Source of the DNA: Anthoceros angustus | Lineage: Eukaryota > Plantae > Anthocerotophyta | Assembly (NCBI GenBank): GCA_010909165.1 | Contig: MU008218.1 | Span: 124,001 to 188,000 of the forward strand | Direction of reading: 5' to 3' | DNA: 64,000 nt | Part shown: positions 12,472-57,197 of the stretch, piece after piece | Numbering within the stretch: the first letter of the stretch is position 1 | Layout: the number at the start of each line of letters is the position of its first letter | Program-made: the position numbers and the translations under genes | Notes under the pieces: generated by a model | What the model saw: the letters and a program-made list of their open reading frames with translations, nothing else | The model's database searches: none | Told to the model about the DNA's origin: nothing

Positions 12472-12715
12472 CTTCTGAAAGTTTATGCCAAACAGAATGC
12501 GTTTGTGCAGAGGCCAGATTCGAGTACTTGTCCTTCGTTTGCAAACTGTCCAGTTTCTCAGCGAAGGACGTTCTGCACAAGTCGGCGGATTTGTATTGGA
12601 AGTCTGCACTGGAGATAGTGTTGTCACATTGTAGCTTCCTCTAAGGAATTCGGACTTCCCAAAATTCCCAGCTCGCAACATGCAGAGTGCGTCCTCCAGC
12701 AAGGAGTGATCGAGC

Positions 12716-12727
12716 TTTGGCGCCAAA
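12716..12727. promoter_or_regulatory. Palindromic E2F/DP site in the MSH2-ALG8 divergent promoter
   Basis: TTTGGCGCCAAA matches TTTSSCGS on both strands and lies ~245 bp upstream of the MSH2 ATG. Confidence 0.6.
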
Positions 12728-12998
12728 CAAAGGCCGGCTCGTTTCTGCTCCCATCAAACCTATGACCCGGCCCGGTTTCAACTAACCGTGATGTACATAT
12801 GTACATACATACATAGGCTCTCCCCATCTCTCCTCCCATGAGCGAAATGCCGTCCTTTTAGTGGAGTAAAATAGATTCTTCTTCTTCTCCCTCAATAAAG
12901 TGGTTAGCCTTATGTATGTACATATGTATGTACCTGCTTACATACTTACTGTACTTACGCTTTGGAGGTTAGCTTGGGAAGTGGCGACGTCGATTGCG

Positions 12999-14893
12999 AT
13001 GGACAAGGTCGGGGGCAAAAGCTGGCAAGATCTGCTACGCGTGGCAGCCTTTGCAACTTGCATCAAGCTGCTGCTGGTGCCCAGCTACCGCAGCACGGAC
13101 TTTGAGGTGCACCGGCATTGGCTTGCCATCACCCACTCTCTCCCTTTGAGAAAGTGGTACAGCGATGAAAGCAGCGAGTGGACGCTGGATTACCCTCCCT
13201 TCTTTGCCTGGTTCGAGAAACTCCTGTCTGTCTTCGGGCGGCTGGTGGACTCTAAGATGGTCGACCTTTCAGAGGGTTTGAATTATGCCACTGATGAAGT
13301 GATTCTTTTTCAGAGGATCACAGTGATGGCAGCTGATGTGGTTTTGTATTACGGTGTTTGGAAATGTACTCGGTTTCTTTCCGATCGGGAGAGAGCTCTG
13401 GCCTATGTGGCAGTGGTGCTGTCCCCAGGGCTCTTGATGGTGGATCATATCCACTTTCAGTATAATGGGTTCCTGTTGGGAATCCTGCTCACCTCGGTAG
13501 GGTTCTTGACGGAGGGCAATGATCTGGCCGGGGCCATTTCATTTGCTGTACTGGTTTGCTTCAAGCATCTCTTTGCAGTGGCTGGACCAGTGTATTTTGT
13601 GTACCTTCTCAGGCACTACTGCAGGGGAAGAGATAAGGTGCCAAGGTTCTTCACTCTGGGAGCAGCGGTATTGGCTGTGGTGGGAGCTGCTTTTGGGCCT
13701 TTTGCCTATCACGGACAGGTACAGGATCCTGGCTTTCTGTTCCTTGGCTCTGACTCGAAAATCAGTTATTAGCGGCGGGTCTGTAAATTGGAGACCTGAC
13801 TTTGGCTGATTATTTGCTGAATCTGAGGCTGTAGGATTTTCCGTGTGTTTTGTGTATGCATTTGCCTCAACCCGACAGATTGCTCAAGTACTCAAAAGGC
13901 TCTTCCCTTTTGGCAGAGGACTATGTCATGCTTACTGGGCTCCTAACTTCTGGGCTCTATACAACATGACAGACAAAGTGCTGGGTATTGCATTTCGTAA
14001 ACTGGGGTTTCGTGTGCACAGTGCAACGGCAGGCTTGACAGGCGGGTTGGTCGGCGATTACTCAGCTTATGCTGTACTACCACAGGTTCTCATCATCCTT
14101 TGTTATGCATGTCAATTCTTGTCTGTAGCAACCTGCTCCGGACTGCGCAGCTCAGGTGCCAACTTTTTGTGCAGGTGACTCCAGCCATGACCTTGAGCCT
14201 GGTTCTTCTTGCAATGCTGCCTTGCTTGATCAGGATTTGGAGGCATCCTGTCGAAACAGAAGTTGTTAGGTGGATCACCTATGCGTATAGCTGTGGTTTC
14301 ATATTCGGCTGGCATGTGCATGAAAAGGCATCCCTTCACATAGTTATACCTTTCAGCCTGATGGCTGTGAGGTCCGCCAGATCTGCAGAGTCTTTCATCT
14401 TTCTATCCACAGGTACGCCCTTCTCCTTTCACTGGGAAGACTGCAATTCTTCATGAGGATAAACGAAGGTGCCGTTTCTTTTGCTGCAGTATCGTACTAC
14501 TCCCTTTTCCCTCTCCTCTTTGAAGCAAAGGAGTATCCTATCAAAATACTGCTTCTGGTTTTGCATACCTGGATCATCTGGCTTGGCTTCTCCAGCCACT
14601 TCTCAACATTTTCAAGTCCACATGGTGCCGACGTAAAAGACCGTGAAGCAGACGCTTCCAAACAACCACAGCGGAGCTTGGTTGACCCGCAAGCCAGCAA
14701 GCTTGTGGGAACTTGTCAACGTGCGTACCTTCTTGGCTTAATTGCTATTGAATGTTACAGCCAAGTGCTGCATCAGTTGCTGTTCAGAGAAAGATTGCCC
14801 TTCCTCCCTCTGATGCTCATTTCTGTGTACTGTAGCTTAGGCCTACTTTATTCTTGGGCAGAGCAGCTCTATAGTATAGTCCGATATCCGTAG
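12999..14893 (+). CDS. ALG8: ALG8 dolichyl-P-Glc alpha-1,3-glucosyltransferase, 4 exons
   Basis: YRSTDFEVHRHWLAIT, WTLDYPPFFAWFE, DHIHFQYNG, RLFPFGRGLCHAYWAPNFWALY, FGWHVHEKA. Exons 12999-13718, 13879-14085, 14175-14412, 14490-14893. Confidence 0.93.
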
Positions 14894-14973
14894 TGCAAAT
14901 GTTGATATATGTTATTTATAATACTAAGAAATGAATAGTTATTTTTTCTCGAATGGATATATTGACTACGGTA

Positions 14974-15107
14974 CTATTTTACATTGAGTTTGAACCTCCT
15001 TCCACCAAACATGCAGCTTGCCCAACAACCTCTCAAAAGGCTATTTTACATTGAGTTTGAACCTCCTTCCACCAAACATGCAGCTTGCCCAACAACCTCT
15101 CAAAAGG
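14974..15107. repeat. Perfect 67 bp tandem duplication
   Basis: 14974-15040 equals 15041-15107. Confidence 0.9.
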
Positions 15108-15582
15108 AAACGGAGGTCCGGCTCTTAAAAAAGTAGGGAGCAACCTTACTTTTAACGGACGGAGCTCCGTTTTTGTCACCGATCCGGCTTTCCCGTAAAG
15201 TCTGACATATTGCCTGTTTATGCGGGATATATCTCGGGTGCATGGAACCACCGGTCCATCTTGTTCCTAGCTTCCGTGTGTTGGACGGTATTCCTGAAGT
15301 TGTCTAATGTGTTCAACATGGATCCCTTGTCCCTTGGCATGTTATCAACGCAAGTTGCAATTATTCCAAGTATTCCATCACAACAAAGTTTTAACTTTGC
15401 CAGCCGTTCCTAAGCTTCGGATCACTTATGCTCCGACCTCCGCTTACGAGGACATCTACGTCAACCACCTTCACAATGGCATCTGGCCTCCCCGCCCCTC
15501 CCTCATTGAACTCAAGATTTCGCGGTGTTGCATTTTATAGGAATTGTTCCCACGGGTGTTTAATGTTGCACAGTCTTCGCAT

Positions 15583-15813
15583 CATACTTCTCGTGTACAT
15601 TTAGGTTCTTCACTATTCTCTACATGTTCTTCAATTTGGAGAGGGCATTTTCCATGACTACTCGTCCAGAAGAAAACCAAGAGTTAACCCTAGAAGACCA
15701 TACTTCTCGTGTACATTTAGGTTCTTCACTATTCTCTACATGTTCTTCAATTTGGAGAGGGCATTTTCCATGACTACTCGTCCAGAAGAAAACCAAGAGT
15801 TAACCCTAGAAGA
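15583..15813. repeat. Perfect ~115 bp tandem duplication
   Basis: 15583-15697 equals 15699-15813. Confidence 0.9.
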
Positions 15814-17759
15814 ATGTCAGGGGTTTTTTTGCAATTTTTCTGCTCAAATATTTATTGTATTTTTTTGGTAATTTTTACATTTTTTTGTCAATATCATAAT
15901 TACAAATTTTCCATTTCCTTCAAAATGATGTATGCCACTTACAATTCTGATGGGTATACATTCTTGCATCAAAATCCATGTAATTTTCCCATATCCTCAT
16001 TTCTTGGTTTTCGGGTAGAATCGTGTGTTGTTTGGGATGCTATAGTCTATGCTTCCTTGAACAAACATTTCATGGAAACCTAGTACTTGTCCTTTAGGCA
16101 CGTGCTAAAGAACGGAGTCAAAAAGTCATGTTTCGTTGCTAAAGAATTTTCACGGAGGTCAACGACCTTGCAACGACCCCGGTCATGGTTACATGAAAAC
16201 TGCATTCCACATATGCACCCACGTGAACACACGCAAAATCGCAAACTGCGTGCCGCGATGGTCAAATTGGAGTGAGGTAGGGGAGCGCTCGGTTACTGGT
16301 TACCGCGCATAACATGGTTTTGGGTTAAAAGCATTTATTGGGATCTTCGAGGTAGAAGTTGGAGTTCGGGGTATTTTTTTTAAAACTTTTTGGAAACATG
16401 ATATTTCAGAACCAGGCCGCCTGAATATATGCTCAAGGTTAGTAAGCTCAAAATATGGGTAAAAATAAATGTATGGATTGATATGTATCATGAAAGACTC
16501 GTTTTGAGTAGATTCGTCATTATGGACCTAAACGTTCTTTGCTCTGCAGTAACAGGAATTTTGAAGCCCTTTATGAGATCTCAATGGATATGCATAGTCA
16601 CCAATGTTACATGGTAGTATTGAAATTCCTTCGACTTCAATCACTGCCCTGCAAATATCCGTGTGGTCACACAAGCCGCAACCATAAGCTACTTCCCCCA
16701 AGAATACTCACGTCATTTGAACCTCCTGCACTATTAGAACATATATTTATAAACATCTTCTTGTTGTCAAATTCAACTTGCACTATCATGCAATGTAGAT
16801 CGTATCGTTTGCAATGCCCTGTTAGAATTAGAAATGCCTGCTTATGTTGCACTTTATGTTAAGATTTGGACCCCTAGATGTAACACTCACGTTGCAAACA
16901 CTTTTTGGGCCCCTTGTTACACTTTGGCTTGGAAACCAGACTAGCGCTTTTGTTGCAATCATGTTGCAAGGGTGTTGCAATTATGTTGAGATGAAGTGAG
17001 AGGTGCTTTTGTCCTCTCTCAAGATTGCAACAAGATTGCAACATATAAAGTGTTACAAGAAAAGTCTTGTAACACTTTTCTAGGCTTCGTACCGAACCTC
17101 CTCCCCATCTACCATTCTCTTTGTACTTTTGCCCTATGGAATACTAAGTTTTACATAGTCGTTACTACTAATACGCCTATCAATACCACTACACATAAAT
17201 GCCCATATCAATACATTCTTCGTATTATATGCATATCATTTACGGTGACATATATGATATCGTATTTTCAATAATATATGTTCATATTATATTTTGTATG
17301 TAATAAATATGTATGTCATACGAGTTATGTACGTATGCTGGTTTGTACATGTTCATTATATGGTACTTTGTATTTACCATTTGTGCAAATCTCTATCCAG
17401 TGCCTCCCAAAAAGTCACATCTTAAAATTTGGGGCATAAAGATGCGTCACCCGCTATTACGTGTCCCCCCACGGCCACGAACTGTCGACTTCCCCTGGCT
17501 CTTTTTTTAACGCACATGAATGTTCCCCCCTTAGTCCTCCTTCCCTCTCTCTCCCCCTAGACAACTGACTCATGTCCATTACGCGCCTTTTTGCCCCTAC
17601 TTCGACCATGGCTGTTGTTGGCTGCTCCACTCCTGTCCTCCCTCTGCCACCCACCTCTTCCACTCCCTTGCGTTGTTTTCACTGTCCGCACTCAACACAT
17701 GTTTGTCACTTAGAACCCTGCCCTACTAGCATCGCTTTCTCAATTGTCACATCACAGTC

Positions 17760-21235: not shown

Positions 21236-22818
21236 ATGGCGGCCTTGTTCCGAGGTTGCTCCGCGCTGCTACTCCGCTTTCCTTCTGTTCCGTCATCAAC
21301 AACTTGGGATGCTTGCTATCCCACCGCTGGTCGGGCTCCCCGCCGAAGCTATTGTAAACTCGTGACGCCGTCAGTTTGGGAGTGGGGGGAATTGAGCAAG
21401 AGGTGGCAGGGCCATGCATTGCCTTGGAGCAGAATAGTGCAGGCGCGAAGTAGACCTAGGGGCAGGCTGATTGCCACTGCTGTGGCTGCGGAGGAAAGGA
21501 GGCGCTACCCTCAAAATGAAGACCTCGCTCCGGTGCTTCCCAAGAGGAAGAAGAAGCCGTATTTGTATGGTGATAAGCCGCAGAGGCGCAAGAATAAAGG
21601 CAGGATGATGGCGATGCTGAAGAAAATGGCTCCAAACAACGGTCTTCTGGTGAAGAATCTCATCCCCGTTGCACACGATGTGATGATGGCTAGAGCTACT
21701 GTCGTGGAAGGTGTCACCAGGCTTCTCACGGTTCATTCTGTCAAGGCTTGCAGGTATTTAGAGTGGAAAGTGGAGCAGTTGTTCTGTGAAGGACTGGTTG
21801 TGAAGGATTCCGATTTGGCAGTATCTTAGAAAGCGTCTAACCTGGTCTCTTCAGGTTCTGTCCAGAGGTTCATGTTGGACCAATTGGACATCTGATCAAA
21901 GACTGTCAAGGCATCAAAGCCAGCCGCAGAAGCGGGCAGCATGAGTGGTGTGCGGGGGAGGTTTCGGATGTCATTGCTCCTGTGGAGTCCTATCACATGT
22001 TGGACAGGTTAGGTCGGCCGGTGTCGCATGACGAAAGGTTCGATGTGGAAAGGATTCCTGCAGTTGTGGAACTTTGCATCCAAGCTGGAGTTGAGCTGCC
22101 AGGGTATCCGACCGTCAGGAGGACGCAACCTGTCCGCAGCACCGAGAGGTACCGGATGTTCGCACCTCCTCCACCCGAGTGGACCGACGAGGTTATCGGA
22201 CAGTCACCTTTACGGGTATCAGAAAGCTCCTCACCATCGGGGGATGACGATGCGCATTGGGAGGAGGATGATTCTGGAAGCGACAATTCAGACGAAGAGG
22301 ACCCCGAAGGCATGCGAGATCAAGTGGCAGAAGACCATGCTGAAGACACCCATTCCAGCTTTCTCTCTTGGACTGAAGCAGACTACATTGCCGACGAGGA
22401 CGACCTCCGCACAATAGCAAACAAGACTCTCAGAGCTTGGGAGAAGATGAGGACAGGATGCCAGAGACTGATGTCCAGGTACCGTGTGCGAGCATGTGGG
22501 TACTGCCCCGAAGTCCAGGTCGGACCACGGGGCCACAAAGCAAGAAACTGCGGTGCCTTCAAGCATCAGTGGAGAAACGGGCAGCATGGATGGCAAGCAG
22601 CTAGCCTGGACGAGCTCATCCCCCCTAAGTATGTGTGGCATGTAGTGGACATGAAAAATCCACTCCTCACCAATCACTACCGCAAGTTCTATGGACAGAC
22701 TCCAGCTGTGGTGGAACTCTGTGCACAAGCTGGAGCAGAGATTCCCGACGAGTACAAGCCCAAGCTCCGGCTTGATGTCGTGATTCCTGACTTGGAGGAG
22801 ATGGACCTGGTGGTTTAA
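21236..22818 (+). CDS. APO: APO-domain (accumulation of photosystem one) RNA-binding/splicing protein, 2 exons
   Basis: Two APO zinc motifs: ACR/FCPEVHVGPIGH and ACGYCPEVQVGPRGHKARNC. Also WQAASLDELIPP and FYGQTPAVVELCAQAG. Intron 21754-21854. Confidence 0.88.
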
Positions 22819-27295: not shown

Positions 27296-27550
27296 TGTTT
27301 CGGCATCGTCCTTCGTACGCAGAAGTGATAGCCTCTTCGCCCACCGGTTTCGTGGGGAGGAGATTGTCTCGCCTGCTCTCGAGGTTAAGGTGCATGCCTT
27401 TCTGTATCACACGGTTTACAAGGAAAGAAAGATTCGGAGGATTTGGGTGGGGGAGTGAGAGATTGGCATTGCACGAGCTTCTTTTCGTCCAGGAGAAGCT
27501 TGTTGCTGACTTGTCGCTTGCATTGATCAGGCCCCTCATTCGCTGTCACC

Positions 27551-30500
27551 ATGAGACTCTCACCAAGAGAGCTGGACAAGCTCTCGTTGCACCAGGCAGG
27601 CTTCCTCGCCCAGAAAAGGCTGGCTCGTGGGTTACAGCTTAACCACCCAGAAGCTGTTGCCCTCATTGCCACACAGGTGAGCGTACGCTGGTCAGGTAGC
27701 CAATTGGAACGGCATGTTGCCGATTGGAATGGACTCTTTGCTACATTGACTCGCTTACTGCTGATATCGATGTGCCCCGTGGTCGTAGATCCTGGAGTTC
27801 ATTCGGGATGGCAAAACTGTCGCAGAGCTCATGGACACAGGACGGCAATTATTGGGAAGGTATGTGCCCTATCTCAATTGGGAAGTGCTTCTTACTGCTG
27901 CTGTCTGCTCTGAAGCTGATGGTACTCTGAATTTCAGGAGGCAAGTTTTGCCTGGGGTTAGGCATCTTCTAGAAACAGTGCAGGTATGCACAAGAAGTAC
28001 AACCAGCTTGGATTTGCGACTTCTTGTCAGAGCGTGACTGTGCCGTGGTTATGGTTTTTAATACTACTCCCGTTTCAGGTGGAGGGAACATTTCCAGATG
28101 GGACCAAGCTGGTCACCATCCACAATCCTATTGCAAGGGAAGGTGGAGATCTCGGGCTTGCTTTGCATGGATCCTTTCTACCAGGTCAGTAACAGACTCA
28201 TTTTTCTTGTTGTATCTGATTCCGCTCCAAGTTCCTCTACTGAACTCTATTGTCCTGATTTTGGTTTCAGTTCCATCTCAGGACATTTTTCCTCTGTCAG
28301 AGGATACGCTGGAACCTGGTCGGGTAGTTCCAAAGCCTGGACGTATTCTGATCAATGAACATAGAGAATGCGTAATTATTAAGGTTATCAATACAGCTGA
28401 CCGCCCAATACAGGTCATTTTTCCATCCTTCACTACTGTGGGATCTCCTTAGTGGATCATGTGCACCACGTTCCCAGAAGCTTGACTTCTTGTTCCCTTG
28501 CTTTCAGGTGGGCAGTCATTACCATTTCGTCGAGAGCAACCCTTACCTTATTTTCGACCGGGAAAGGGCTTATGGAAAGCGTTTGAACGTTCTGGCTGGT
28601 ACTGCAGTCCGGTTTGAGGTATATTCCTTTTTTGCATGGTTTCCTTATGTTCCGGAGAGGAAGCAGGTGTTTGTAGGAAGTCCTTTCTACGATGAATGAC
28701 CTGAGGCCTGATTGGGGCCTGTTGCATTGCTCCAGCCAGGTGACGAAAAATCAGTAGTTCTTGTCAGCATCGGTGGCAAGAAAGTAATCCAGGGTGGTAA
28801 TGGGTTAGCAAAAGGTCCCGTGGACGAATCTCATCTTCCTTCAATAATGCAGAGGGTAACCTCCAGAAACTTTGGCCACAGGAAGCAACCCGAGGCCTGG
28901 TATGTGCAAACCTGCCGGCTGTCTAGTCTCATGCATTGTTTCAGAATGCAGTCTGTCCTCCATTTCTGCTTCTACTTTGTATGTGTAAGGTGAAAAATGT
29001 TAATACTAGTGTGTCTGCAGGGTTGGTATTTCTGGAAAAGATGAAAAAGTGACTTGCTGGGTGTCTCGGGAACAGTACTCCCATCTGTTTGGTCCAACAA
29101 CTGGTGACAAAGTGAGGCTGGGAGACACAGACCTTTATGCAGAGGTGGAGAAGGATTTTGCTGTCTACGGGGATGAATGCAAGTTTGGTGGAGGTAAGGT
29201 CCTTAGGGATGGCATGGGGCAGGCCTGTGGATATACTGCAGCTATGACGCTAGATGTTGCAATCATCAATGCCCTAGTTATAGATTACACTGGAATATAC
29301 AAGGCAGACATTGGTATCAAAGGAGGGAATATAGTTGGAATAGGGAAAGCAGGGAATCCGGATGTGATGGATGGCGTCTCTGAGAACATGATTGTTGGTG
29401 TAAGTTGTGATCCTCAACGTCTTTTTTTCAGTTTTAAGTTTGAGTGGTCACTGGGTCTGGAGTAAATATGGTGGCTACGTTTTGACATTGTACTTTTGCC
29501 TCATGAAGGTTAACACTGAAGTGATAGCAGCAGAAGGATCAATTCTTACTGCTGGAGGTATCGATACTCATGTGCACTTCATATGCCCACAGCTTGGACG
29601 CAGCAATCTCCATGAGGTGAGGTTAGAAGAAACTCAGATGTGTTCTCCAGACTGTGGCTTTCCTCAAACTCACTCCCGCAGTGGAGTCTACGGCAGGAGG
29701 CCGTTGAATACGGTGGATTTGGGTTGATGTCTTTAAGAAACAATATCTGTACCCTTCAACGGTTTAATTCTGCATTTGTGCAGGCTTAACAACATTGCTT
29801 GGTGGAGGAACAGGGCCAGCTCATGGAACAGCTGCAACGACTTGCACACCTGCTCCAGAACAAATGCGTTTAATGCTTCGCGCAACAGATGACATCCCCT
29901 GAACTTTGGGTTTACAGGAAAGGTGGATGAATGGCTGGAAGTATAGTCGTGTTTTGGTGTGTAGACTCGCTTTCTTTGAAACACTGACAGCAATGACATT
30001 TCAGGGTAACTCTGCAAAACCAGACGGTCTTGCTGATATTATCAGAGCTGGTGCCGTTGGTCTCAAGCTGCATGAAGATTGGGGCACAACACCAGCTGCT
30101 ATCCAGAATTGTTTGTCAGTTGCAGATGAATTCGACGTGCAGGTAGGTTATGACCTCTTGGGGCACGATATTTTCATTCGTGATCCTTACGGGCTACTCT
30201 TGTTGACTTCGTTATGATCTCTGTGTACTGATATTGAAGGTAACTATCCATACCGACACTCTTAATGAGTCGGGATGCGTGGAGCAGTCAGTCGCAGCTT
30301 TTGGAGGTCGAACCATTCACACGTACCACAGGTGAGTCTCTGATCGATTTCGTGTGGGAAAGGTGTTGGAGCTTGAAGTGCTACACCTGCTTCTGAGTTG
30401 GGCGAGCACATATGCTTTGAAAGCTGACGATGTGATTGTGCTTGCATCAGTGAGGGAGCGGTGGAGGACATGCACCAGACATCATGATGGTTTGCGGTTT

Positions 30501-31822
30501 GCCGAATGTTCTTCCATCCTCAACCAATCCAACCAGGCCGTACACAGTCAATACCATTGATGAACATATCGACATGCTTGTAAGTATGTTTGATGTGCAT
30601 ACTATGTTTCGCCGACCTGGTCCTGTGGTTTATCGTTCTTGACTTTGGAGACAAGCAGAGAATGTCATTCCGGTTCATGGACGTCTGCGGTTTGTGTATG
30701 TGCAGATGGTCTGTCATCACCTCAACAAGAGCATAGCAGAAGACGTTGCTTTCGCAGAGTCCAGGATCCGTGGTGAGACCATAGCTGCAGAGGATATCCT
30801 TCATGACATGGGCGCCATCAGCATGATGTCATCTGATTCTCAAGCCATGGGTCGCATAGGAGAGGTTGCACAGGATCACTAAACCGTGTGTACAGCTAGC
30901 TTGAGGAAAACTCGTTATGTGGAGGTGTGCTCATCAGTTTGACATTGTTTCAGGTTATAACGCGCACGTGGCAGACAGCTCATAAAATGAAGCAGCAACG
31001 GGGACAGCTGCCCGACGCATCAGCTGATGACAATGATAATCTAAGGATCAAGCGTTACATAGCAAAATATACTATTAATCCTGCTATTGCCCATGGTTTT
31101 CCAGGCTTGTTGGATCTGTTGAGGTGTGTACCACTTGTTGAGCTTGATTTAGGATATGTCTCTGGATGTCTCATAAATAGGAATGAACATCTGTGTCCTG
31201 AGTGCAGGTCGGGAAGCTTGCTGATTTAGTCTTATGGAAACCTGCCTTTTCGGACTAAACCGGAAATGGTTATAAAGGAGGAGTTATTGCCTGGGCTCAA
31301 ATGGGTGATGCCAATGCAAGCATTCCAACTCCGGAACCTGTATGTGTCATTGTGCTTCGGCCTGTTGAAAATTACGTGTCTTGATTCTCGTCTCGGCTGT
31401 ACTGCAAGCGCTGATCATTTTGTTGTTGAGAGATATTGCAACAGGTTTTGATGAGGCCGATGTTTGGAGCTTTGGGGAAGGCTGGGAGCTCACATTCAAT
31501 CGCTTTTGTTAGCAAGGTATGGCTTTAGTCTTGAACATTTGGGTCTGGCTGCAGTCTATTTAGCGTAGGAATGCTGAAGAGAATCTTGGGCATTCTCCAG
31601 GCTGCCAAGTTGGCTGACGTTAAAGCGGAATATGGACTTCAGAAGCGTGTGGAGGAAATACAGAATGTTAGAAATCTAACCAAAAGGGACATGAAACTGA
31701 ATGACTTAACGCCCGACATTGTCATCGACCATGAACATTACACTGTATCCGCCGATGGAGTGATGCTTACTTGCCAGCCTGCTGCCACCCTGCCACTGAC
31801 ACAAAACTATTTCCTGTTCTAG
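27551..31822 (+). CDS. URE: Urease (fused gamma-beta-alpha eukaryotic type), 18 exons
   Basis: [101 protein letters not shown], terminal YFLF*. A few 1-2 nt indels (e.g. ~29596, ~31100, ~31250) lie mostly in homopolymers. Confidence 0.95.
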
Positions 31823-31929
31823 TTTAATTCTTCTGTTGCGATGAGGACTGATCCTGACGATTGTGCAGCTCTGGACAAAACGCCTGGTCCAGGGGCCAAG
31901 AACCAGTCACTGAGGTACCTGATCCTTTA

Positions 31930-32648
31930 ATGGGTACCTCGGCTCGAGCAAGCCATGAAAGTGATGTCAAACATCTTCCATTGGAGTGGAGTGTGTGGCA
32001 GCTGCTTGATTCCCTACTGCCAACAGGTGGATTTGCTCATTCCTACGGTCTGGAGGTTGCTGCGCAAACTCATCTGGTAGCGGATGCTACCTCACTTGAA
32101 GACTTTATCACATCATCTCTGGAGGGAGTAGGTGCCTGATGCTGCCGTTTATTTATTGTGCTCACAAGCAGCCAAGGACAGACTCTTGATTCAGTTAGAC
32201 CAACTGTTTCATGCAACGCTGACGAACCAAGTTGGAAGAAAGGCATCGTTGGCTCAAGGAGCTGCCCTTCTGCGAGTGGCTGCCACGGTGTTTGTAGATA
32301 TTGCAGAGTTGCCGACCATGCGTGCTACTGCCAGGAAGCCCGGCACAGTGCATGTCCATTACGCACCCATGTATGGAGTTTTATGTGGCCTTCTTGGATG
32401 GGATTCCATGACTGCCCAACGATCTTTCCTGTTCTTAACACTTAGGGATATTCTGTCAGCTGGGACGCGGTTGAATGTGGTAGGTCCTTTGAAGCAGCGT
32501 TCCTGCAGCACCGGCTTTCTAAAGTTGCAGAAGCCGTCCTGAAGAAGTATGCAAATCGGCCAGCTGAAGATGCACATCAAACATCGCCTCTACTGGATAC
32601 AGTTCAAGGCTGTCATTCTCATCTATTTTCACGGCTCTTTGCTCTTAG
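31930..32648 (+). CDS. UREF: Urease accessory protein F, intronless
   Basis: WSVWQLLDSLLPTGGFAHSYGLE, ASLAQGAALLRVA, HYAPMYGVLCGLLG, LRDILSAGTRLNVVGPL, DTVQGCHSHLFSRLF. Three to four single-base deletions are needed to restore the frame. Confidence 0.9.
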
Positions 32649-33863
32649 GTGACGGTTCTAGGGGTTTGAGAGGAGAGTTTGTGCAAACTGGGTTGTTTCT
32701 ACCTTTGGTTCCTGTGCGTCAACTTCTGCCAGGACTGTGACAGGAAGCTGCGGCTTTGCCTGCCTGCGCGAGATATTCAGGTGGTGCGGTGACAGACTGC
32801 CGGAGTAGCTACAGGATATTTTGCGTTTGTGTCAGGTTTCAATTGGTTTTCTCTCTCTCGACGCTTGCATGCTGTATCCGCTTGTGTCTCTTATGGCGTC
32901 CACAATGCCATTGTACCCGTTTTCGGTCGATCTAAAACTTCGCGGCCATACCGGGATACCAAAGAATCCTCTTGTCTCAAGAAATGAAAGGTGTTTGAAA
33001 TGCAATTCGTTGGATGTTGGTGCTTTTTCACGTTCCGTTGCCTCCTTCCTGTGTAGGTAAGAATGCACCACAGATCGGGTTCTTTGGTCTCATTTTTGTT
33101 TGTGTGGATTGCGACCCAGTTCAGCACCACTCTCAGCTGAACAGATCTGTCGAACTGTGACGAACATACTTGAAATCTGGTGAAGGGACCTGCCTTTCAT
33201 AAGCACTCCGAGGCTCTCACGAAGCTTAATTCCCAACCGGAGATGATTTGGACTTGTTTTTCACCTTCCTTGGCGTTGTGTATGCTGCAACCATAAATTC
33301 TCAGCAATATGCAGTTTTCCAATGCGCCAGCCAACCACAACGTAGTGGACTGGGTGGATGAGCGTGTGGCATCGGCCTCGCGACGTCTGACATTTTTGTT
33401 GAGTGGTTCCACCACATTCGAAAGATGCAGCCTGGGTGACATTTTCACGGAAGCACTTGTTGGTTCTCAATGGTATTCCGCAGCAAAAGTGTTGTAGCAA
33501 AATTGCAAATCCGTGAAGAGGCAAATCCCAGCCAGGCCATAGGGTTAGATTAGCGTGTCATGTTGGCACACACAAGCAATGTATGGCGACGGTTGGATGG
33601 ATAGTTATCATGTAGGACAAAGAAGAAACCTTGAGCTTTGAAAAGGTATGCCAACCTTCTACAAAAATTAGTGCAATATCATCACCCTAGTGCTCATCCA
33701 CCGAGGCTCAACGGACATTTGTGGTTCCATTCAGTTTTGTCCAAAGGGGTTCAGCCCGTGGACTGCCTCCCGAATAAAGAAATCGGATCGTTGAACCAAA
33801 CTCAACCACATACTTTTCATTCTATGATTCAAAGCGATGGATGCGGTTGGATGTGGTTGTCTC

Positions 33864-34271
33864 GGTGTAATAACCTTTGGTTGCGGCTTGAAATATAATT
33901 CGTTGAATTTTGGTGCTTTATCATATTCTTTTCTGTATAGGCCAAGAATTCACCACAAATAGGCTTCTTTGATCTCATTTTCGTTTGTGTGGATGGCGAC
34001 CTAGCTCACTCCATTCTCAGTTGAACATATCAGAGGTGTAATAACCGTTGGCTGCGGCTTGAAATATAATTCGTTGAATTTTGGTGCTTTATCATATTCT
34101 TTTCTGATAGGCCAAGAATTCACCACAAATAGGCTTCTTTGATCTCATTTTCGTTTGTGTGGATGGCGACCTAGCTCACTCCATTCTCAGTTGAACATAT
34201 CTGTAGGTGTAATAACCTTTGGTTGCGGCTTGAGATATAATTCGTTGAATTTTTGCTTTATCGTATTCTTT
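33864..34271. repeat. 171 bp tandem repeat (2.4 units), target of the copia insertion
   Basis: GGTGTAATAACC starts at 33864, 34035 and 34206. The unit resumes at 41377 after the element. Confidence 0.85.
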
Positions 34272-37200
34272 TGTGAATAAAAAGCTGTAATCACAATAAT
34301 GAGAATTAAAATATTATGAATATACATGAGGGCTTATATAGCAAAAGCTCTAAGGTTGTGTCGCTCAAGTTAACCTAATTATTTATTAGATAACTAATAT
34401 CTAATAGGCAACCGTTTATAAGGAGAACCGAACGGATTCTCCTTCCAACACGCCCGTAACGGAGCACGCTTGTTAGTGGAGTGTGGCGGCGAACGATGCC
34501 AAGCTCCATAGCTCAATGCCTCGCACTCGCTCCTTCGTGATTGCCACTTATCTCTTGTACCAAGACCGGCGCGATGAGCAAAGAAAGAGCGACGTGGGAG
34601 GATGCGGAGAGTGAGGCAGTCCGGTCGTCACCCCGCATAGCCATTTACGATAAAATGGCGATGGCAAATTGCTGGGAGTGGCGGTGCAACTCGGGTCGAG
34701 AAGAAGCTTGACGCCATCCCAAAGACCGCATCTCGAAGAGGAGTTACGCGCAATTCAATGCCTTGCCCGCCGCCTCAAGATGACTAAGTACTCTAGTAGC
34801 TGCGATGCGATTGGGTTTGAGCTTGTTGCTTCATCCACCATAATCTGCGGTGGTCAAAAGTCCATAGAGATTAGGTCCGAGTCGGCACAGCCATAGCCTC
34901 CATGTGTTGATAATGCTTGCTAGCGTGCGATACTTCATCGTAATGTCGGCGGTGTTTAGTCGCCGACACATGCCGGATTCTCACATGGCGCTGCTCCAGA
35001 GTCGGATAAAATGATGATGCACTTCAATGTGCTTTGTACGCGCGCATGAAACCGAGGGTTTGCGATAATGGTAGACATGTTGTCACGTAAATAGGAGTAG
35101 GCTGTGATCGTGAATACCAAGGCTCGGCCAGAAAAATCTGCTCCTGACATTTTAGCCTCCGCCGCTTTGTATTGACCGGTGGAGGACAAAGCCATCAAGA
35201 TTGCTTCTTCGAGCTCCGTGAATACTGTGGAATTCAAAGTGAAGCAATATGCCGAGATGCTTCGTCGGCATCCGGGTCGGTGGCCTAGCCCAGTCGGGGC
35301 CAGAACCACACAAGGTAGGTGCTTGCCTCGCCCAAGGCGAGGCCATATTCGAGTGCCTTTTAGGTATCGGAGGACCCTCTTAACCGCACTCCAAAGGTGT
35401 GGCTGGGATTGTCGGCGGGAGACAGAGCTCACAAGATAATCAATGTCCGGCCTTGTCCAAAGAATCGATGTAATTGAGGCAGCCCACGGCATGGCGATAA
35501 GGAACTCGAGCCATGGCTGGCGCTCCTCATCTGTCTGTGGACACTGATCATGAGACAACTTCAGCCGGCAACACGGTGGACATAGGTTTGGCGTGTCGGA
35601 TGAAAACGGTGCGAGTTTCTGATATATTTGGCTTGATGAAGCATAAGGGAACCGATCCAAGTCACGAACAAGTTGGACACCGAGGACAAAGGTAAGAGCT
35701 CCAATGTCTTTCATGTCAAACTTCTGATGGAGCATGTCTTTGACCCAAGATAACAAGCCGGGATCGTTGGATGCAAGAATGGCATCGTCGACATACAAAG
35801 CGAGAACCACGAAAGTACCATCCTTGTTGTAAAAATACACGTTGGCATCACCAGGGTTTTGAATGAAGCCGATGGATTTAAGGTACTTGTCAATTGTTTT
35901 GTACCATTCTCGTGCATTGCTTTAACCCGTAGATAGTCTTCTTGGATGGCGGACCCAATCCGGTGCTTAGGGTCTATAAAACCCTCGGTTGGGACATATA
36001 TATGTCCTCCTCCAACTCACCGTATAAAAATCATGCGGGGCGTCCATCTGGAGGTCCCAAGCATTTGTGAGCAAGAATCATACGGATAGACTGGGTCTTC
36101 ACAACGGATGAAAGTCTCAGAAAGTCTATCCACAGGATGGGTGAAACCCCGCCACGAGCCTCGATTTGTAGCGAGCAATCTCACCCCGAGCATTCAACTT
36201 GTGCTTGAAGACCCACTTGCGGTGACAACTTTTCGACCTTTAGGTAAGGCACGACTCCCATGTATCGCTTTTAATCAAGGAGTCGATTCGGCCCTTGATA
36301 GATGGTATCCAATGTGCCTTGTCGGCTCCGTGGTTGCCTCTATATGACCGAGGTTCGAGCTTGAGAAAAAACGGAGTGCTCACGGGGACTTGGATTGTGG
36401 CATGGATACTCCACTCTAGGTCGTCGAAAATCAATAGAAGCATATGGAGGTTACATCCCGCTGCGAGGAGGATTCCTCGTGCGTTGAGGATACCGCGTTC
36501 GAATTCGGCCACGGGGACTTCAACAGTCATCCTCAGCGGAAGCAGTCGTAAATTTTCATTCAAACCAGATTACGTAGAGTGAGCAGAGACATCTTCCACA
36601 GCCTAACTCATACGCAACCTCGTCCTCTGCTGTTCCGGGAAATCGTGTATATCCGGAGCTGGTCCTCATGAGCCAAGTCGGGAGTGCTTCATGGGTAACT
36701 AAATCGGGAGCATGATCATCAGTGCGCAAGGTCATTGCTTTGTGGATGTGCGGACCCTCTCCGGGGTTTGGCAGTGCAGGGGCATCAATAAAAACAACAC
36801 CGGTGAATCATCTTGTGGGAATTCGGATGAAGCTTCCATATCTGTCAAGTCTACATGAGTAACACGCTCGTTATCGGACGTGATCAAAGTATGGCTTGGC
36901 AGGACATGCGAGCTCCTTGAAAGTCACACTTCTTGCAAAAACTGCGGTCAAGGTAAGTGGATCAATCAGCTTATAAGCTTTCGCTTCTTCTCCATATCCC
37001 ACGAAGACAAGTGGGCGTGCTCGGTCTTCTAATTTCAGCCGCCGCTCTTCATGGATGTAGGCATATGCTGGGGAGCCGAATACCCTCAGATGCAGGAGAC
37101 TAGGCTTCCTACGCCATATCACCTCAAATGGGGTCTGGCCATCCACAGCACTAGTCGAGCCTGTTTAAGAGATAAGTCGTGACCCTTTGGCCCCAAGATG

Positions 37201-40200
37201 CCTTGCTTAAGCCTCGCCCATTCTAACATGCTGCGGTCAAGGTAAGTGGATCAATCGACATAAGCTTTCGCTTCTTCTCCATATCCACGAAGACAAGTGG
37301 GCGTGCTCGGTCTTCTAATTTCAGCCGCTCTTCATGGATGTAGGCATATCTTTGGGGGCCGAATACCCTCGGATGCGGAGACTAGGCTTCCTACGCCATA
37401 TCACCTCAAATGGGGTCCGCCATCCACACTAGTCGAGCCTGTTTAAGAGATAAGTCGTGACCATGCCTCAGATGCCTTGCTTAAGCCTGCCCATTCTAAC
37501 ATCTGCGTGTCATGCCCAGGTCTGGTTGCACGCTCAGAACACTGCTCAACTGCGAGTATAAGGGACAATCACCGTACAACACCTCTTTCCAACAAGAATC
37601 GGTTGAAGTGGGCGTGAGTGAATTCGCCCCGTTGTCTCAGAGCATCAAGCTTGTAAACACCTGTTTGTCTCCGCCATCACCAACCATTCCTTAAATACTT
37701 GAAGGTATCGACTTCAACCTAAGTGGGTAAGTCCAGAATAGCGACTAAAGTCGGTGATGGTAAGGTAGTATAGGCGCCGCCTAGAGAGGGAATATGTATC
37801 TTGCGAGATATGCATGTACTAACTCTAATACTTGTGATGCTCGATGAGCCAGATCGAGGAAAAGGAAGTTCCTTTGCTTGGCTATGACAGGCATCACAAA
37901 GAGGTAAGTCTTTAAAACATTTCGCAAGGGCTCTCTATAGCGATTCGGGTGAGACATCTTTAACTTATCTTTATTAGCATGACCTAATCGGCATGCCATA
38001 AACTAGCTTGAGCACTGTGATAGATAAGTAGCATGCACAGACTCGGGAGGGATGCATGTGAGATCAAGGTACAAGTCATGAAAGAGATGTCCTTTAGCTA
38101 CGACTGTCCTTCCCCTCGCTTCTTAAGTGCACAACTATGAGAAGTGAAAAGAGGTCGTACTCTACGGAGGACAATAATTGAGATCGAAAGTAGATGCTTG
38201 GCCATAAGAGGTACATGTGGACGGCTCAAGATGCCTTGCTTAAGCCCATTCTAACATCTGCGTGTCATGCCCAGGTCTCAAGTGACGTCAAGAACACCGC
38301 TCGAAGGACAATCACCGCGTACAACACCTCTTTCCAACAAGAATCGGTTGAAGTGGGCGTGAGTGAATTCGCCCCGTTGTCTCAGACGAATTGTAACAAA
38401 CACCTGTTTGTCTCTCCGCCATCACCAACCATTCCTTAAATACTTGAAGGTATCGACTTCAACCTAAGTGGGTAAGTCCAGAATAGCGACTAAAGTCGTG
38501 ATGGTAAGGTAGTATAGGCGCCGCCTAGAGAGGGAATATGTATCTTGGAGATATCCGCATGTACTAACTCTAATACTTGTGATGCTCGATGAGCCAGATC
38601 GAGGAAAAGGAAGTTCCTTTGCTTGGCTATGACACGAGCATCACAAAGAGGTAAGTCTTTAAAACATTTCGCAAGGGCTCTATAGCGATTCGGGTGAGAC
38701 ATCTTTAACTTATCTTTATTAGCATGACCTAATCGGCATGCCATAAACTAGCTTGAGCACTGTGATAGATAAGTAGCATGCAGACTCGGGAGGGATGCAT
38801 GTGAGATCAAGTCTGGTACAAGTCATGAAAGAGATGTCCTTTAGCTACGACTGTCCTTCCCCTCGCTTCTTAAGTGCACAACTATGAGAAGTGAAAAGAG
38901 GTCGTACTCTACGGAGGACAATTGACTGACGAAAGTAGATGCTTGGCCATAAGAGGTACATGCAGACGTTGTCAAGATGGAGGATGGACCCATCGTTCAA
39001 CCGAAAGCGACATGTACCGGACCAGAATATGCGACCGATCTTGGTAAGTTCGTCCCAATGAACTTTATCGATGTACGAGAGGGTCTCAGAGTGAATGAGC
39101 AGAACTCCTATCATTGCGGATGTGAGAGGTTGCTCCAATCTAAATACCAATGCGGGAAGGAGGATTTGCGAAGACGAAACAAGCGATCATGACGATCGGA
39201 GGTTTGTTGGAAGTTGAGGAAGTCTTGGCGGCGTGGGCCTCGACGCTTTGGCTTCGACCTTACGAGCCATGACTTTCTTCTTAGGCCTCTCTCTCCAGTG
39301 GCCTGTATGCCACACGGTTACGAACCAGCCGCTTGAGGAAGGACGGAAGGTGAGTCACCGGTGGTGATCGACCCGCCCATCCTTTCAAACTTGTTTCCTT
39401 TGGTATAAAGAACCTCGGTTTTGTTTTCCACCATGTGGTGTGGAATAAAGCACCTTTGTTCCTCTTGCGGAGAGCACCAATTACGTCGACAAGGCGATTA
39501 GAGGTTTGGTACCGCTACCTTGTGCCGCGAATGGAAGATCCATAGCCGGAGGCAGATGTCCGTAGCGGGTGGTAGCAGTGAGGAGTTGGGCAGTCCAACT
39601 CGAGCTGAGATCCTAAGTTCGAGCTGGGCCCTTAAGCGCCGAAACTTCACGACGAAAGGTCCCACCTTCTCGCCTTCTTTAAGTCTCATTGAAAGCAGTT
39701 CTCCACGGATTGCGTAAGTATGTTCTTTGCCTCGTCGTTTGCGAGTTGTGTCCAGATTTCGTTGGAGTCTTCCGGGTAAGCCACATCGTGGAGGAGTACC
39801 TCATCAAGACCACTAATCAAGACCGCACGAGCCACATGATTCGTTATCCCACTTCGATTTCATCCTTTGGAGCGATGAATCTTTGGTTTAGGAATGGAGC
39901 CACTAACAATGCCCCACACGTGCGTACCGCAGGGCAGCCGCTGTGAACACGCCATCCATGGAACTTCGTGCCATTAAAGCGGTCTTTCTCCTTAAATTCC
40001 ATTGAGAAAGACGGAGCGGGGATAACAGACATGGGTGGAAGAGGTAAGGCGACCACTCCTCCTCCTGCGCCTCCTGTACCTCCTGCGCTGCCTCCACCTC
40101 CACTGACCCCTCCTGTAGCCATGCAGACGTATTACAGAAAAAAAATTATCGAGCGCACAAGGGTGATCAGGCCGAGAGCACAAGGCAATTCTTCTCGTAA

Positions 40201-41962: not shown

Positions 41963-44900
41963 GGTAGGTTTCAAAGCCACGCGCTTTCCTGTGTCACTAA
42001 TTTGACCTCCGTCGTTCGCCGCCCAAGGAGCTATGGAGAGAGTGAAATTGAAGGCCCACCTATTGCAAATTCGTTGATGCGACATGAAATCAAGGTAGAA
42101 CATGGACGATCATGAGCACACCATGATGGTGCTGCAAAAGCTTTATCGCGAGCTAAGTGAAGGTCACAACTAACCCGAGGTCTAATATATAGAGCATGTC
42201 ACGCCACTCGTTGATGGTGAGGAGTATATAGCCCGACAATCCGTCTTCACTCCCGCAATGTATGGCTGCAGCCTCCAAAAATGGGCTGAGGTGGAGGCGC
42301 CGAGGTGGAGACCAAACATTTTTGGGGAATGGAGAGCCACAACGAGTGAAGAGCGGTGAAGAATGGAGAGCCAATAATATAGGTGAAAATGGAGAGCCAA
42401 CATGAGTGAACCTATCGGGCTTATACTTCACTCAAACGTAATATATTCTCTAATATTCTCGTACTCTTTATGTTCGTCTATTAAAAGATAAGTTAAATAA
42501 GGATTTGAAGTACAATATATGGTGCATATAAAATAAAGAGTTAACGCATAGGTACCTTTCATTGAAAAATTGAGGATTAAGTTAGTGAAGTATTAGTTAG
42601 CTAATTTGATCATCAATAAAAAAAACTGATTAACATAGTGATAATAAATCTTCATATGAACTTCAATAAAATAAAAATTAATTGAACCATCGATGACATA
42701 CATGGTTGTCGAGAAAAATATAAAAGCTTGTTCTATATATGTAACGCTATACCTTCTTAATCATCACAAATTTTTGATGTCAATATGGATGCCATAATTG
42801 CTAGAAAAGTTATAGATGATATTATGCCCCAGAAAAAATAAATTATTATTTCAGAGATGCACTATTTGTACATGAAACTTTCTATGAACCACAAAACAAA
42901 GAGAATACGAAGGTATATTAACATTCTTCACCTTTTTATAATATTTTATTTTATTTCTTTGTTTTCTTCCTTACGTAAGGCTATGATTGATTGCGGTACC
43001 TTAAGCGATATGAGTTTATAGGGATTTTGTGTTAAGTTTCTTGATCTCAACATTCTTCTACGAAAATTATCCGGACGTACATTCGCACGTTAAGCGATAT
43101 GCAGCGTGAATAACGGCCACTTGGCTACTATTTGTGTGAAACAAGGTATTGTTAGATACTTTGTATACATGTTTGAATCTATTGTATAAAACAAGCAACT
43201 GTTAGATACTATGTATGCATGTTTGAATCTTTTGTATGAAACAAGGCAGTTAGATACCATGTATACATACTTGAATCTATTGAATGAAATACGGTACTTT
43301 TAGATACTTTGTATACATGCTTCATCTATTGCTTCATGCCTTCATGTTTGCTATTATGACGAATGTGTAAAGGATCCTCACTTCGCTACTTTGTATGTTT
43401 AAAGGTATTCTTTGAATGCTTTCGTCATAGATTTTGGATTATGATACGATCGTGGAGGAACTTATTATTCCAGCTGAAGAAGATCATATACCATGGGGCA
43501 CAATGAAACGATGACATGTAAGTATTTTGTTATTGGTATAGTATTTCAACTTGTATCATTAGGACATATCCATATGTTCAATACGTTCTTTAGAGTGTTA
43601 ACACGAGTTTTCTATACATATTGAGCCTCGTGTGTTTGGATTTGATATTTTGTTTAATACTAATATCGACATTACACGATTTTTGCCAACTATTATGAAA
43701 GTATTCTTGGAGTTATATATGTTGATAGTAACTATAACATTCGAGGTGAAAAGAATTATCAAACCACTTTATTCACGAATAAAGAAGTTTACTCCATGGA
43801 ACTTGCCACAAAATCTGCTCAGACGCTACAAGAGATATGCCGTGAAAGGTCTCCAATGGGAGGTAGAGTGGAAAGTTTTAGAAGATGGAACCACAAAGGC
43901 TAAAGGAATAGTAGCGACAATAGAAGACAAGCCTCGACATATTGTGATGCACGCGAATCGAACCCGCCGTCGGTAAGAAAGCAGCAAGGATAAATCTAGC
44001 GAACGTATGCTACCACAACTACAGGTACTTTTATTGTACTTATTTTGAATGTACTAGATGTTTACTTATTGACCTTTCAAATATGTGCTAATTATTACAG
44101 ATAAGTGTTATGATGCGAGCTTACCCGATTTTAGAAGAAAAACTTCTAGCGTACAATGTAAATTTTTTAATCGTTTCATTTATTTAAATTATACTAATTT
44201 TTCTCTTATCTTCATACATATAAAACAAATTTCTTTTATGGATTAATGGGCTGCTGAGCTAATTTTTCAATCTAACTTTTGCGCTACTATGTGCAACAGA
44301 AGAAAGCAAGTGCAAATTGAAGCCCCTTACAATCCAATCACATGGACGAAGATGTACAGAGATCTGGAGTGCATTGAACTATCAATTTCATCATAAGTTC
44401 ATTGTAACGGATATTTATGCGCCTTCAAGTGACCAACAAATTCGGTGGATAACTTTCAAACTAATTTTATTTATTCCTATTATAAATATAGTATTACCTC
44501 TAAAAGGTTAACTTTTCTTAGATTTATGTTTTGGTTTATGAGGCACATTGATGTTTTAGACAATGCACTATGTTTTAATGATCATAATATTATTATTCAT
44601 AAAATGTTAACAAATCTAATCTTAATGGTTGTAGTACATGGAGCGCTAGCATTTTGGGTGACGCGGGCTTGGCTTCCTAGTATCCAAGCACCGATTCAAG
44701 TATATCCAAACGAAGATTCCGGAAAGTTAAGCGACTTGAGAGCAACAGAAACAATGGGCACTTGGCAAATGTATTTATGGACAAGGGCATAGCTCAATGT
44801 TTTAGCCAGAATAGAGCGACAATGATATTGTCAAAGATCTCAATGCGAAAAGGACAACAAGCATTACATGGGGTAGTCCAAGAAGGCATCAGTCAACATA

Positions 44901-46661
44901 CTTCATCATATTTGTTTAAAACTTTAAATTTTATTGTTTTGAGCTAGATAATATTGAAACAAGACATGTTTCTTGGTTCAGTTTTGATTACTTGAACTAT
45001 CATTGGCGCAATATTTTGGGATATGCGGTTTGATGAGGAGAAAGTGCATGATTTTACGTCAACTTATTGATAGTATCACAAGTTCAGTGGAAGACTGCCG
45101 ATAAAACCCAAATTGCCTTGTCCAGAGGCATGTCAAGAAAAAGGAATAAACTTTGTTACAACATATGAAAATCTAGATGGTACTCACTTGAAGATGGTGG
45201 GAGTTTTAATCGATCCAAGGAGGCCACAAGATCCCTTGTGATGATGACATCGATCCTTCATCAAGTCAAAAGACGACGTATAAATTTAGCGAGAAGATAA
45301 AACCATATTTGAGGTACCCTCTCGTGAATCTCTTGGATAGTTTTAGATGTTTGTCAACTCGACATGAAATACTAATCCCTTGTTTTGTAATGTGTTAGGG
45401 CTTACCAACTTGCAAACAAGAGAATTCAAGAATGCATCGTAATGTTCACACTTCCTCTTTCTTTTCTTGACTTTGACATTTGTTTGTGGATAAATTTCAA
45501 TATTCAAGTCAATCTAATTGAACTCCTCACAGTGACATGCAACGTCAAGAGTTGATAAGTGCGCTTCTGATTTGGAAAAATTGGAGGTATTGTGTTTTCG
45601 CATGAAATATGGAAAACCTAAAATTAAACTCTTGAGAAGAAGGTCCTCCAAATTGCAAAAAGTAAGATTTGAAGTTATTTGAAAAATAATGTTTATTTAT
45701 TAACTATGTTTTGTACTAAACAATTTTTAATTTTAACCATGCATTTACTTATATGGTGAATATTGATGTACCTCAATTTGGTACAATGGAGTGCCTTGGC
45801 GACCCAAAGCCTAAAATGTTATTAGCTCAGCACTCCATTATACAAATGCTCACAAAGTTGGAAGTATCCTCGAATGATCCGAAAAGGCCAAAAGTAACCC
45901 TTGTACAAATTTGAATTTTGTACAAGTTTGCGAAGTTATGATTGGAGATTTCGTTTGAGACTTCATTTTTAAGGAGGATTTAGTCTTTAGAATACATTTG
46001 ATATGGTAAAACGATAAAACTTCTAAAGTTACTCATAATCTAAATCTTGCGTGGATTTTCTTTGAGATGAACATGATGTCCGAAATAGACCTTACCGTTA
46101 TCGTTTGGTTATCAACCTACACTCCGCATTCATATATATGAGCAGGGGACATTTTCCCAAAGAATTCCTCCGCACACAAGGCCTCAGTTCACACAGGTTA
46201 GCGCTGCTTCCAATGTCACCTGAGGAATTGCAAAACAATTTGCAAATCCGCTCTCGTCTTCCTTGAATCGCGGCGCACCGGTTCCGTGTGACTGAATTCT
46301 AGGCAACCCAACCAAATAGTAGCGAGTCCGAGCGAGGTGGATCGTCGCTCGATTTTCTAACTCTTTGTGTTATGATGAGAGGTGACAGATTGATGTTAGC
46401 CAACCGTGTCCTCGCTTTGACAGTGGAGTTAGGCAAGCACGTTCACCGCATGAGCAGGCATTCCGTTATTTTCACGATCGACTAGGCGTACAACGCAACA
46501 ACCAATAGCAAATCGATGCACACGGTACCCATCCGTCACAACAATGTCTCTCCATTCAAGCCTTGACATGATCTCTATGGAACTGCGGCAATCATTGCAC
46601 ATGCATAGATTCTTGGTTACTTGAGCTATCCTCTGGGAGTGTTCAAGAGGCCAAAAGCTAG
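41963..46661. repeat. 4.7 kb AT-rich block X, copy 1 (TE-like, ends inside the DYW coding region)
   Basis: Near-identical to 49885-54651. Contains ATGGAGAGCCA repeats, a ~48 bp minisatellite and degenerate coding pieces. Confidence 0.85.
43130..43320. repeat. ~48 bp minisatellite, four units (second copy ~51090-51280)
   Basis: Recurrent TGAAACAAG..TGTTAGATAC..TGTAT.CATGTTTGAATCT. Confidence 0.8.
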
Positions 46662-54651: not shown

Positions 54652-54655
54652 TTGT

Positions 54656-57090: not shown

Positions 57091-57197
57091 TTTAATTCTT
57101 CTGTTGCGATGAGGACTGATCCTGACGATTGTGCAGCTCTGGACAAAACGCCTGGTCCAGGGGCCAAGAACCAGTCACTGAGGTACCTGATCCTTTA

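Follow-up and report, generated by a model that had tools for sequence, protein, structure and literature searches.

A urease–UreF gene pair with a transcribed 107-nucleotide spacer in the hornwort Anthoceros angustus

A urease gene followed directly by UreF

We examined a 64,000-nucleotide (nt) stretch of the Anthoceros angustus genome assembly (GCA_010909165.1, contig MU008218.1, positions 124,001 to 188,000, forward strand), hereafter the window, in which a urease gene is followed on the same strand by a gene for UreF, predicted to build the urease nickel center together with UreD and UreG. We propose, with moderate confidence, that the two are an intact and expressed nuclear pair, that their proximity is an ancestral relic, and that UreF is made from its own mRNA beginning inside the 3' end of urease. 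The features on which this proposal rests, in window coordinates, are as follows.

27358–31822, + strand: urease gene, with its ATG at 27551, about 18–19 exons thereafter, and stop codon TAG at 31820–31822
Ending at 27387, + strand: 5' untranslated region (UTR) exon of urease; the loose 5' end of an RNA-like contig (X2, see below) matches 27358–27387
31599–31822, + strand: last urease exon (AAKLADVK…NYFLF, then stop), joined as 31514 to 31599 in both RNA-like runs (X2 and X19)
31823–31929, + strand: spacer, 107 nt in the window, transcribed
31930–32648, + strand: UreF coding region, free of introns, with stop codon TAG at 32646–32648, delimited by its Pfam match and corrected translation
32649–33032, + strand: 3' UTR of the transcript or transcripts carrying UreF, to the end of the X2 contig at 33032

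Three urease exons give Pfam matches (Urease_gamma, E = 4.7e-16; Urease_alpha, E = 1.1e-53; Amidohydro_1, E = 2.3e-07), and the three domains lie on separate exons of one spliced contig, the arrangement of a single-chain eukaryotic urease. One exon is 88% identical to the urease of Klebsormidium, and tblastn matches the last exon to the urease C-termini of Klebsormidium and of two further algal contigs (L007 and L011). UreF is recognized by its PF01730 match at 32162–32485 (E = 2.4e-17; 64 bits against a cut-off of 23.3) and is 63% identical to the best representative from an exhaustive protein search.

Direct reading of the sequence places NYFLF and the TAG at the end of the last urease exon and the UreF ATG at 31930, both on the + strand, which bears out the stop, start, strand and 107-nt gap given in the original prediction. 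The second copy with the same layout, also part of that prediction, is present as well, with its TAG at 57088–57090 and ATG at 57198 (offset 25268). A motif search of the spacer (31823–31929) found none of AATAAA, ATTAAA, TATA or TATAAA, in line with the earlier claim that it holds no AATAAA or TATA box. A T-rich stretch lies immediately 3' of the urease stop codon. The sole spacer ATG, at 31841, has a purine (G) at −3 and, after correction of the sequence, shares the reading frame of UreF. Given a G that is missing from the window after 31891 and present in X2, the true length of the spacer is probably 108 nt.

RNA contigs cross the spacer

Contigs from four public runs were compared with positions 27400–33040. 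X1 (DNA-like) and X2 (RNA-like) come from the organism of the window, here organism A, and X3 (DNA) and X19 (RNA-like) from a related one, organism B. Being contigs, they merge overlapping transcripts and resolve neither starts, ends nor single molecules.

In organism A, an X2 contig of 3562 nt has the urease introns removed. Thirteen of its 15 listed joints are GT..AG, and the other two sit at indel-rich places. Its final piece lies unbroken on 31599–33032, extending from the last urease exon through the spacer and the whole of UreF to some 385 nt beyond, with 0 substitutions over these 1434 nt, spacer and UTR included. This bridging contig is one unbranched record with a single mean depth of 88.9, and it assembles UreF with no leader intron. 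Its end, at 33032, falls in T-rich sequence and has AATGAA-type motifs 30–50 nt upstream; it is also 8 nt short of the end of the compared stretch. A second X2 contig extends upstream into the 5' UTR exon that ends at 27387.

Organism B gives a similar picture. A 1108-nt X19 contig on 31599–32698 takes in the last exon, the spacer and UreF, and 31419–31910 is spanned by a DNA contig. In X19 the assembly is interrupted precisely where the last urease exon begins, with a depth of 71 downstream against 36 on the urease-exon contig; contig depth is a poor measure, and we take the break and step as no more than slight evidence of another class of transcript.

Because a spliced RNA-like contig runs from the urease exons through the spacer and UreF into a 3' UTR, the spacer is transcribed continuously, and we conclude firmly that the urease and UreF transcription units overlap or are one. 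The argument of the original prediction therefore holds: a 107-nt gap leaves too little room for two independent units that do not overlap. Of the two arrangements it offered, a dicistronic mRNA or a UreF promoter within the urease 3' end, both are still live, and the contigs fit either.

Downstream of UreF, the DNA and RNA contigs of organism B diverge from the window at 32772, beyond which their sequence resembles that near 33125; some 350 nt on the 3' side of UreF that organism A has (window 32773–33120) thus seem to be missing from organism B. Another X19 contig has only 32594–32772 in common with the window, and its flanks are unrelated.

Both genes are intact beneath assembly errors

As assembled, the UreF frame is broken, with shifts near 32135, 32187 and 32490 and then at 32637. 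The original prediction had treated UreF as a plain open reading frame (ORF) from 31930 and overlooked these breaks. The X2 contig carries one additional letter at each of ten places (29895, 31096, 31246, 31251, 31276, 31891, 32135, 32187, 32490 and 32637). At nine of the ten the insertion lengthens a homopolymer, and most are also present in the DNA and RNA-like runs of the related organism. With the letters after 32135, 32187, 32490 and 32637 restored, UreF becomes a clean protein of 240 residues with the C-terminus LFSRLFCS, collinear end to end with plant UreFs, including the representative P0001. Because the run contigs restore each missing letter and so yield this protein, the frame breaks in UreF and urease are 1-nt assembly under-calls, mostly in homopolymers, and the genes are intact. 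A UreF pseudogene was rejected on these grounds. The practical warning is that an assembly that drops single homopolymer letters makes intact genes resemble pseudogenes, and annotation of it needs RNA support.

The absence of introns from UreF might suggest a retrocopy; we rejected this origin, as the plant UreF ORF is always intronless, in all 11 plants surveyed (PMC3130180). A bacterial origin or contamination was likewise rejected, given the urease introns evident from the spliced contig, the plant gene nearby (APO_RNA-bind) and the position of the window UreF within the land-plant clade of a UreF tree (support 93/95). Because the tree places the protein inside land plants, we read the gene as vertically inherited and not as a bacterial insert. 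An exact look-up of the 86-residue N-terminal ORF from copy 2 returned no matching record. A word search with the longest stop-free piece of UreF (136 residues) had no hits, full-length UreFs of 240 residues or more falling outside its length window, and two others, one with P0001 and one with a mixed profile of P0001 and window pieces, gave no hornwort-like UreF and returned only seed plants, one lycophyte and other entries.

In the organism B DNA run X3, summed contig depth over UreF (31936–32700) is 113–377, against about 55–70 over urease, a 2- to 6-fold excess. The X3 contigs over UreF have loose ends at 32133, 32200, 32207 and 32303 and, at 32316, an inserted CAAT. The excess could reflect variant contigs or additional fragments derived from UreF.

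The gene order recurs in algae

Representatives of UreF were drawn from the exhaustive protein search, and their genomic places were then examined. In Klebsormidium nitens (L008), urease ends at 8934 and is followed by UreF at 10001–13253 and UreD at 13459–16927, all on the + strand. Contig L007 (SRR24581282) has a urease ending in TYFLF and a stop codon, 265 nt of spacer, UreF, 7 nt, and a UreD with an intron, all on one strand. Contig L011 (SRR9302961) has a urease ending in DYFLF and a stop codon, 166 nt of spacer, UreF, 20 nt, and a UreD-like ORF, again on one strand. The UreFs of L007 and L011 fall outside land plants in the tree. Urease thus lies upstream of UreF, adjacent and on the same strand, in the window, the related organism, Klebsormidium, L007 and L011. 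Because the order recurs in the related organism's contigs and in three algal lineages, the adjacency did not arise by chance.

In three other land plants, Marchantia paleacea, M. polymorpha and Diphasiastrum complanatum, the 10 kb on either side of UreF contain no urease. Urease was also not found in the 88-kb UreF locus of Chara braunii, which is weak evidence given the long introns there. UreF RNA contigs are monocistronic in a conifer-like plant and in Marchantia. The synteny comparison called for by the original prediction is accordingly split, with adjacency present in the related organism and the three algae and absent near UreF in the two Marchantia species and Diphasiastrum. UreD was not found in the 64-kb window by tblastn with UreD parts, and UreF here has no UreD directly downstream as it has in the algal clusters. 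The simplest reading of these sequence comparisons is that the pair is what remains of a URE-UreF-UreD neighborhood ancestral to the green lineage, a neighborhood that hornworts would have kept minus UreD and other land plants would have dispersed. If confirmed, this would mean that a neighborhood of an enzyme and its assembly factor survived from streptophyte algae into one land-plant lineage.

Two side observations concern the accessory genes themselves. With UreF-to-UreD gaps of 7–20 nt, the two algal contigs (L007:182–1219 and L011:1036–2047) are good candidates for polycistronic expression of urease-maturation genes, and so of a nickel-enzyme maturation pathway. Among the UreF representatives, P0053 (632 residues, from a JGI/ENA contig) is a natural UreD(UreH)-UreF fusion; accessory genes can also be coupled by fusion.

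A duplication carries a second UreF and a truncated urease

The 3' half of urease, UreF and sequence downstream are present twice in the window.

29387–34107, + strand: duplication copy 1, with the 3' half of urease, UreF and the downstream region, from self-BLAST; similarity of about 89% continues to 39882
54656–59371, + strand: duplication copy 2, with a 5'-truncated urease (TAG 57088–57090) and UreF (57198–57916)

The urease of copy 2 lacks its 5' half and starts with the final part of the exon ending at 29399. The duplication is at least 10.5 kb long (29387–39882 and 54656–64000), with 99% identity over the first 4.7 kb and about 89% beyond. Self-BLAST puts the copies at 99.07% identity with 20 gap openings, and 25 of the 44 differing columns are gaps, a gap-rich pattern that looks unlike real divergence. 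The junction is supported in the DNA-like run of organism A, where an X1 contig has its loose end at 29387 and matches 54626–54655, and depth rises there from 14 to 26.6.

Between the copies lies an AT-rich element flanked by 4.7-kb direct repeats (41963–46661 and 49885–54651), which are 94.8% identical to each other. Because copy 2 starts 4 nt past the end of the second of these repeats, the layout suggests a transposon-associated rearrangement behind the duplication. Should UreF have a promoter of its own inside the duplicated segment, copy 2 may be active too; the RNA contigs do not distinguish the copies.

Other features surround the pair. Upstream of urease is an exon of an APO RNA-binding gene (PF05634, E = 3.3e-69; 21841–22815, + strand). 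A copia-type reverse-transcriptase fragment (RVT_2, E = 2.7e-09; 34959–35840, − strand) lies 3' of UreF within the duplicated segment, and self-BLAST finds repeats downstream of UreF as well.

How UreF may be made

The listed urease exons and the spacer together hold 62 ATG triplets before UreF, seven of them in the last exon alone, and the first ORF is about 2.5 kb long. These figures rule out translation of UreF by leaky scanning from a dicistronic mRNA, and the "operon-like" label of the original prediction is not supported in the sense of a urease message that also yields UreF. Because this route is closed, we favor a separate UreF mRNA. Its start, which we consider about evenly poised between right and wrong, would lie within the 3' end of urease, in the last intron, the last exon or the spacer, and given the upstream ATGs it would have to be in the spacer or close to the end of the exon. 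Transcripts of urease would extend into UreF or continue past it, giving two overlapping units with a shared 3' end region. Coupling of the enzyme to its activator would then arise through shared chromatin and read-through transcription rather than through translation of a common message.

Four observations weigh against this proposal. A leader beginning in the last intron or exon would carry 7–8 upstream ATGs, which is unfavorable for UreF translation. The separate start site is a prediction, as contigs carry no transcript-start information. The RNA-like contig of organism A shows no branch at the last exon. Finally, X1, which is DNA-like and from the same sample, has only three of the ten insertions and agrees with the window at the other seven; we presume that X1 is the noisy long-read data set from which the assembly was made, which would explain its sharing the same errors.

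The best placed alternative, though an unlikely one, is a dicistronic nuclear mRNA, a single capped, spliced and polyadenylated transcript. Because leaky scanning is closed, such a message would need reinitiation or internal entry to yield UreF, possibly from the ATG at 31841. This ATG is the only one in the spacer, lies 18 nt past the urease stop in the UreF frame and has its purine at −3; used as an alternative start, it would give a UreF of about 270 residues in the corrected reading, a frame that depends on one inserted letter whose place was not located. The unbranched spliced contig over urease exons, spacer, UreF and 3' UTR in organism A is what a dicistronic mRNA would produce, and the spacer offers no hexamer resembling a poly(A) signal. 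The same cluster in algae has UreF-to-UreD gaps of 7 and 20 nt, and green algae are known to have nuclear polycistrons (PMC7896298). However, a contig across two genes does not prove a single molecule, the long first ORF and its 62 ATGs exclude the mechanism documented in algae, and the discontinuity of X19 at the last exon, in assembly and depth alike, points faintly to a further class of transcript. Eukaryotes, moreover, reinitiate inefficiently once a long ORF has been translated. The fuller version of this idea, in which UreF is initiated by reinitiation or internal entry 18–108 nt after the 2.5-kb ORF on one spliced hornwort mRNA that is itself an "operon" inherited from algae, we consider improbable.

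Two abutting units are less likely than a dicistronic mRNA. Here urease would be polyadenylated inside the 107-nt spacer, UreF would start tens of nucleotides later, and the bridging contigs would reflect only nascent RNA or occasional read-through. In its favor, poly(A) signals in plants are loosely defined, a T-rich stretch comes straight after the stop codon, and contig assembly requires merely a thin 31-mer overlap. Yet the bridging contig of organism A is undivided and has no branches, with one mean depth of 88.9, last exon, spacer and UreF also share a single contig in organism B, and a core promoter together with a cleavage site would fit extremely tightly into 107 nt.

We judge it very unlikely that the locus is an artifact or a pseudogene, whether through a mis-assembled adjacency and duplication or through two UreF copies that are truly frameshifted while the RNA comes from another locus. 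The window assembly is indeed rich in errors, and X1 matches it at seven of the ten indel places. Against this stand the RNA-like contig with 0 substitutions over 1434 nt, the extra letters and same adjacency in DNA and RNA contigs of a second organism, the duplication junction with its two-fold depth step in X1, and the homopolymer under-calls at nine of the ten sites.

Read-through of the urease stop into a urease–UreF fusion protein is scarcely credible: the corrected reading does put urease and UreF in one frame, with a single TAG and then 36 sense codons between them and no other stop in the spacer, but such an arrangement is expected by chance in about 6% of cases, X2 has six extra letters within 31599–33032 of which five were located and the sixth could lie in the spacer and leave the frame uncertain, the extra G at 31891 is not seen in organism B, and urease and UreF are out of frame in L007 and L011. 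To our knowledge, TAG-T is not a leaky stop context.

A separate UreF mRNA from within the urease 3' end thus remains our preferred explanation. The locus offers a test case for tightly packed tandem plant genes, which may be expressed from an internal promoter, by read-through, or from a dicistronic mRNA that works beyond leaky scanning. It is also compact and tractable, and Anthoceros is reported to be transformable (PMC10952725).

Comparison with known systems

In Arabidopsis, URE (At1g67550) and UREF (At1g21840) are unlinked. The proteins are the same as in the hornwort, and the UreF ORF is intronless in both settings. In Arabidopsis and soybean, however, the genes for urease and UreF are unlinked and the UreF leader contains a 5' intron, whereas here UreF abuts urease. 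Soybean UreF lies on chromosomes 2 and 14 (PMC3130180).

Bacterial urease operons (ureABC-ureEFGD) resemble the pair in placing the structural gene ahead of accessory genes in one direction, and in the role of UreF and its PF01730 fold family. They differ in that the hornwort urease is encoded as one fused chain, interrupted by about 18 spliceosomal introns, and UreF groups with land plants. Independent initiation at ribosome-binding sites, as in those operons, is impossible in the plant cytosol. The gene structure and the tree point to vertical eukaryotic inheritance of the pair and to neither a transferred operon nor contamination.

Nuclear polycistronic mRNAs have been described in green algae (Gallaher et al. 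2021, PMC7896298; Dueñas et al. 2024, PMC11291117). The hornwort pair is like them in having two co-oriented ORFs close together and an RNA assembly over both with one 3' end. The algal examples have a short first ORF (median 444–600 nt) in a weak Kozak context and few ATGs before the second (PMC7896298, PMC11291117), in contrast to the 2.5-kb first ORF and 62 ATGs found here, which do not suit leaky scanning. The algal mRNAs are backed by single-molecule evidence, whereas the present pair is known from contigs.

The closest likeness is to the conserved "urease assembly" neighborhood reported among green algae, including K. nitens (Foflonker & Blaby-Haas 2020, PMC7826186), whose supplement gives urease–UreD neighbors in O. 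tauri, Bathycoccus and K. nitens; a red-algal case is cited there (Qiu et al. 2013). In common with it, the hornwort locus has urease beside accessory genes, the order URE then UreF, and a shared strand. It differs in being in a land plant and in having only UreF beside urease in the 64-kb window. Its 107-nt spacer contrasts with about 1.07 kb in Klebsormidium and is closer to the 166 nt of L011 and the 265 nt of L007. The novelty implied by the original prediction is accordingly narrower than it seemed: the linkage itself is known in green algae (PMC7826186), while the literature searched contained no description of urease–UreF linkage in hornworts or any other land plant. The A. angustus pair is a land-plant member of this published algal neighborhood type, with an unusually short spacer and RNA support across it.

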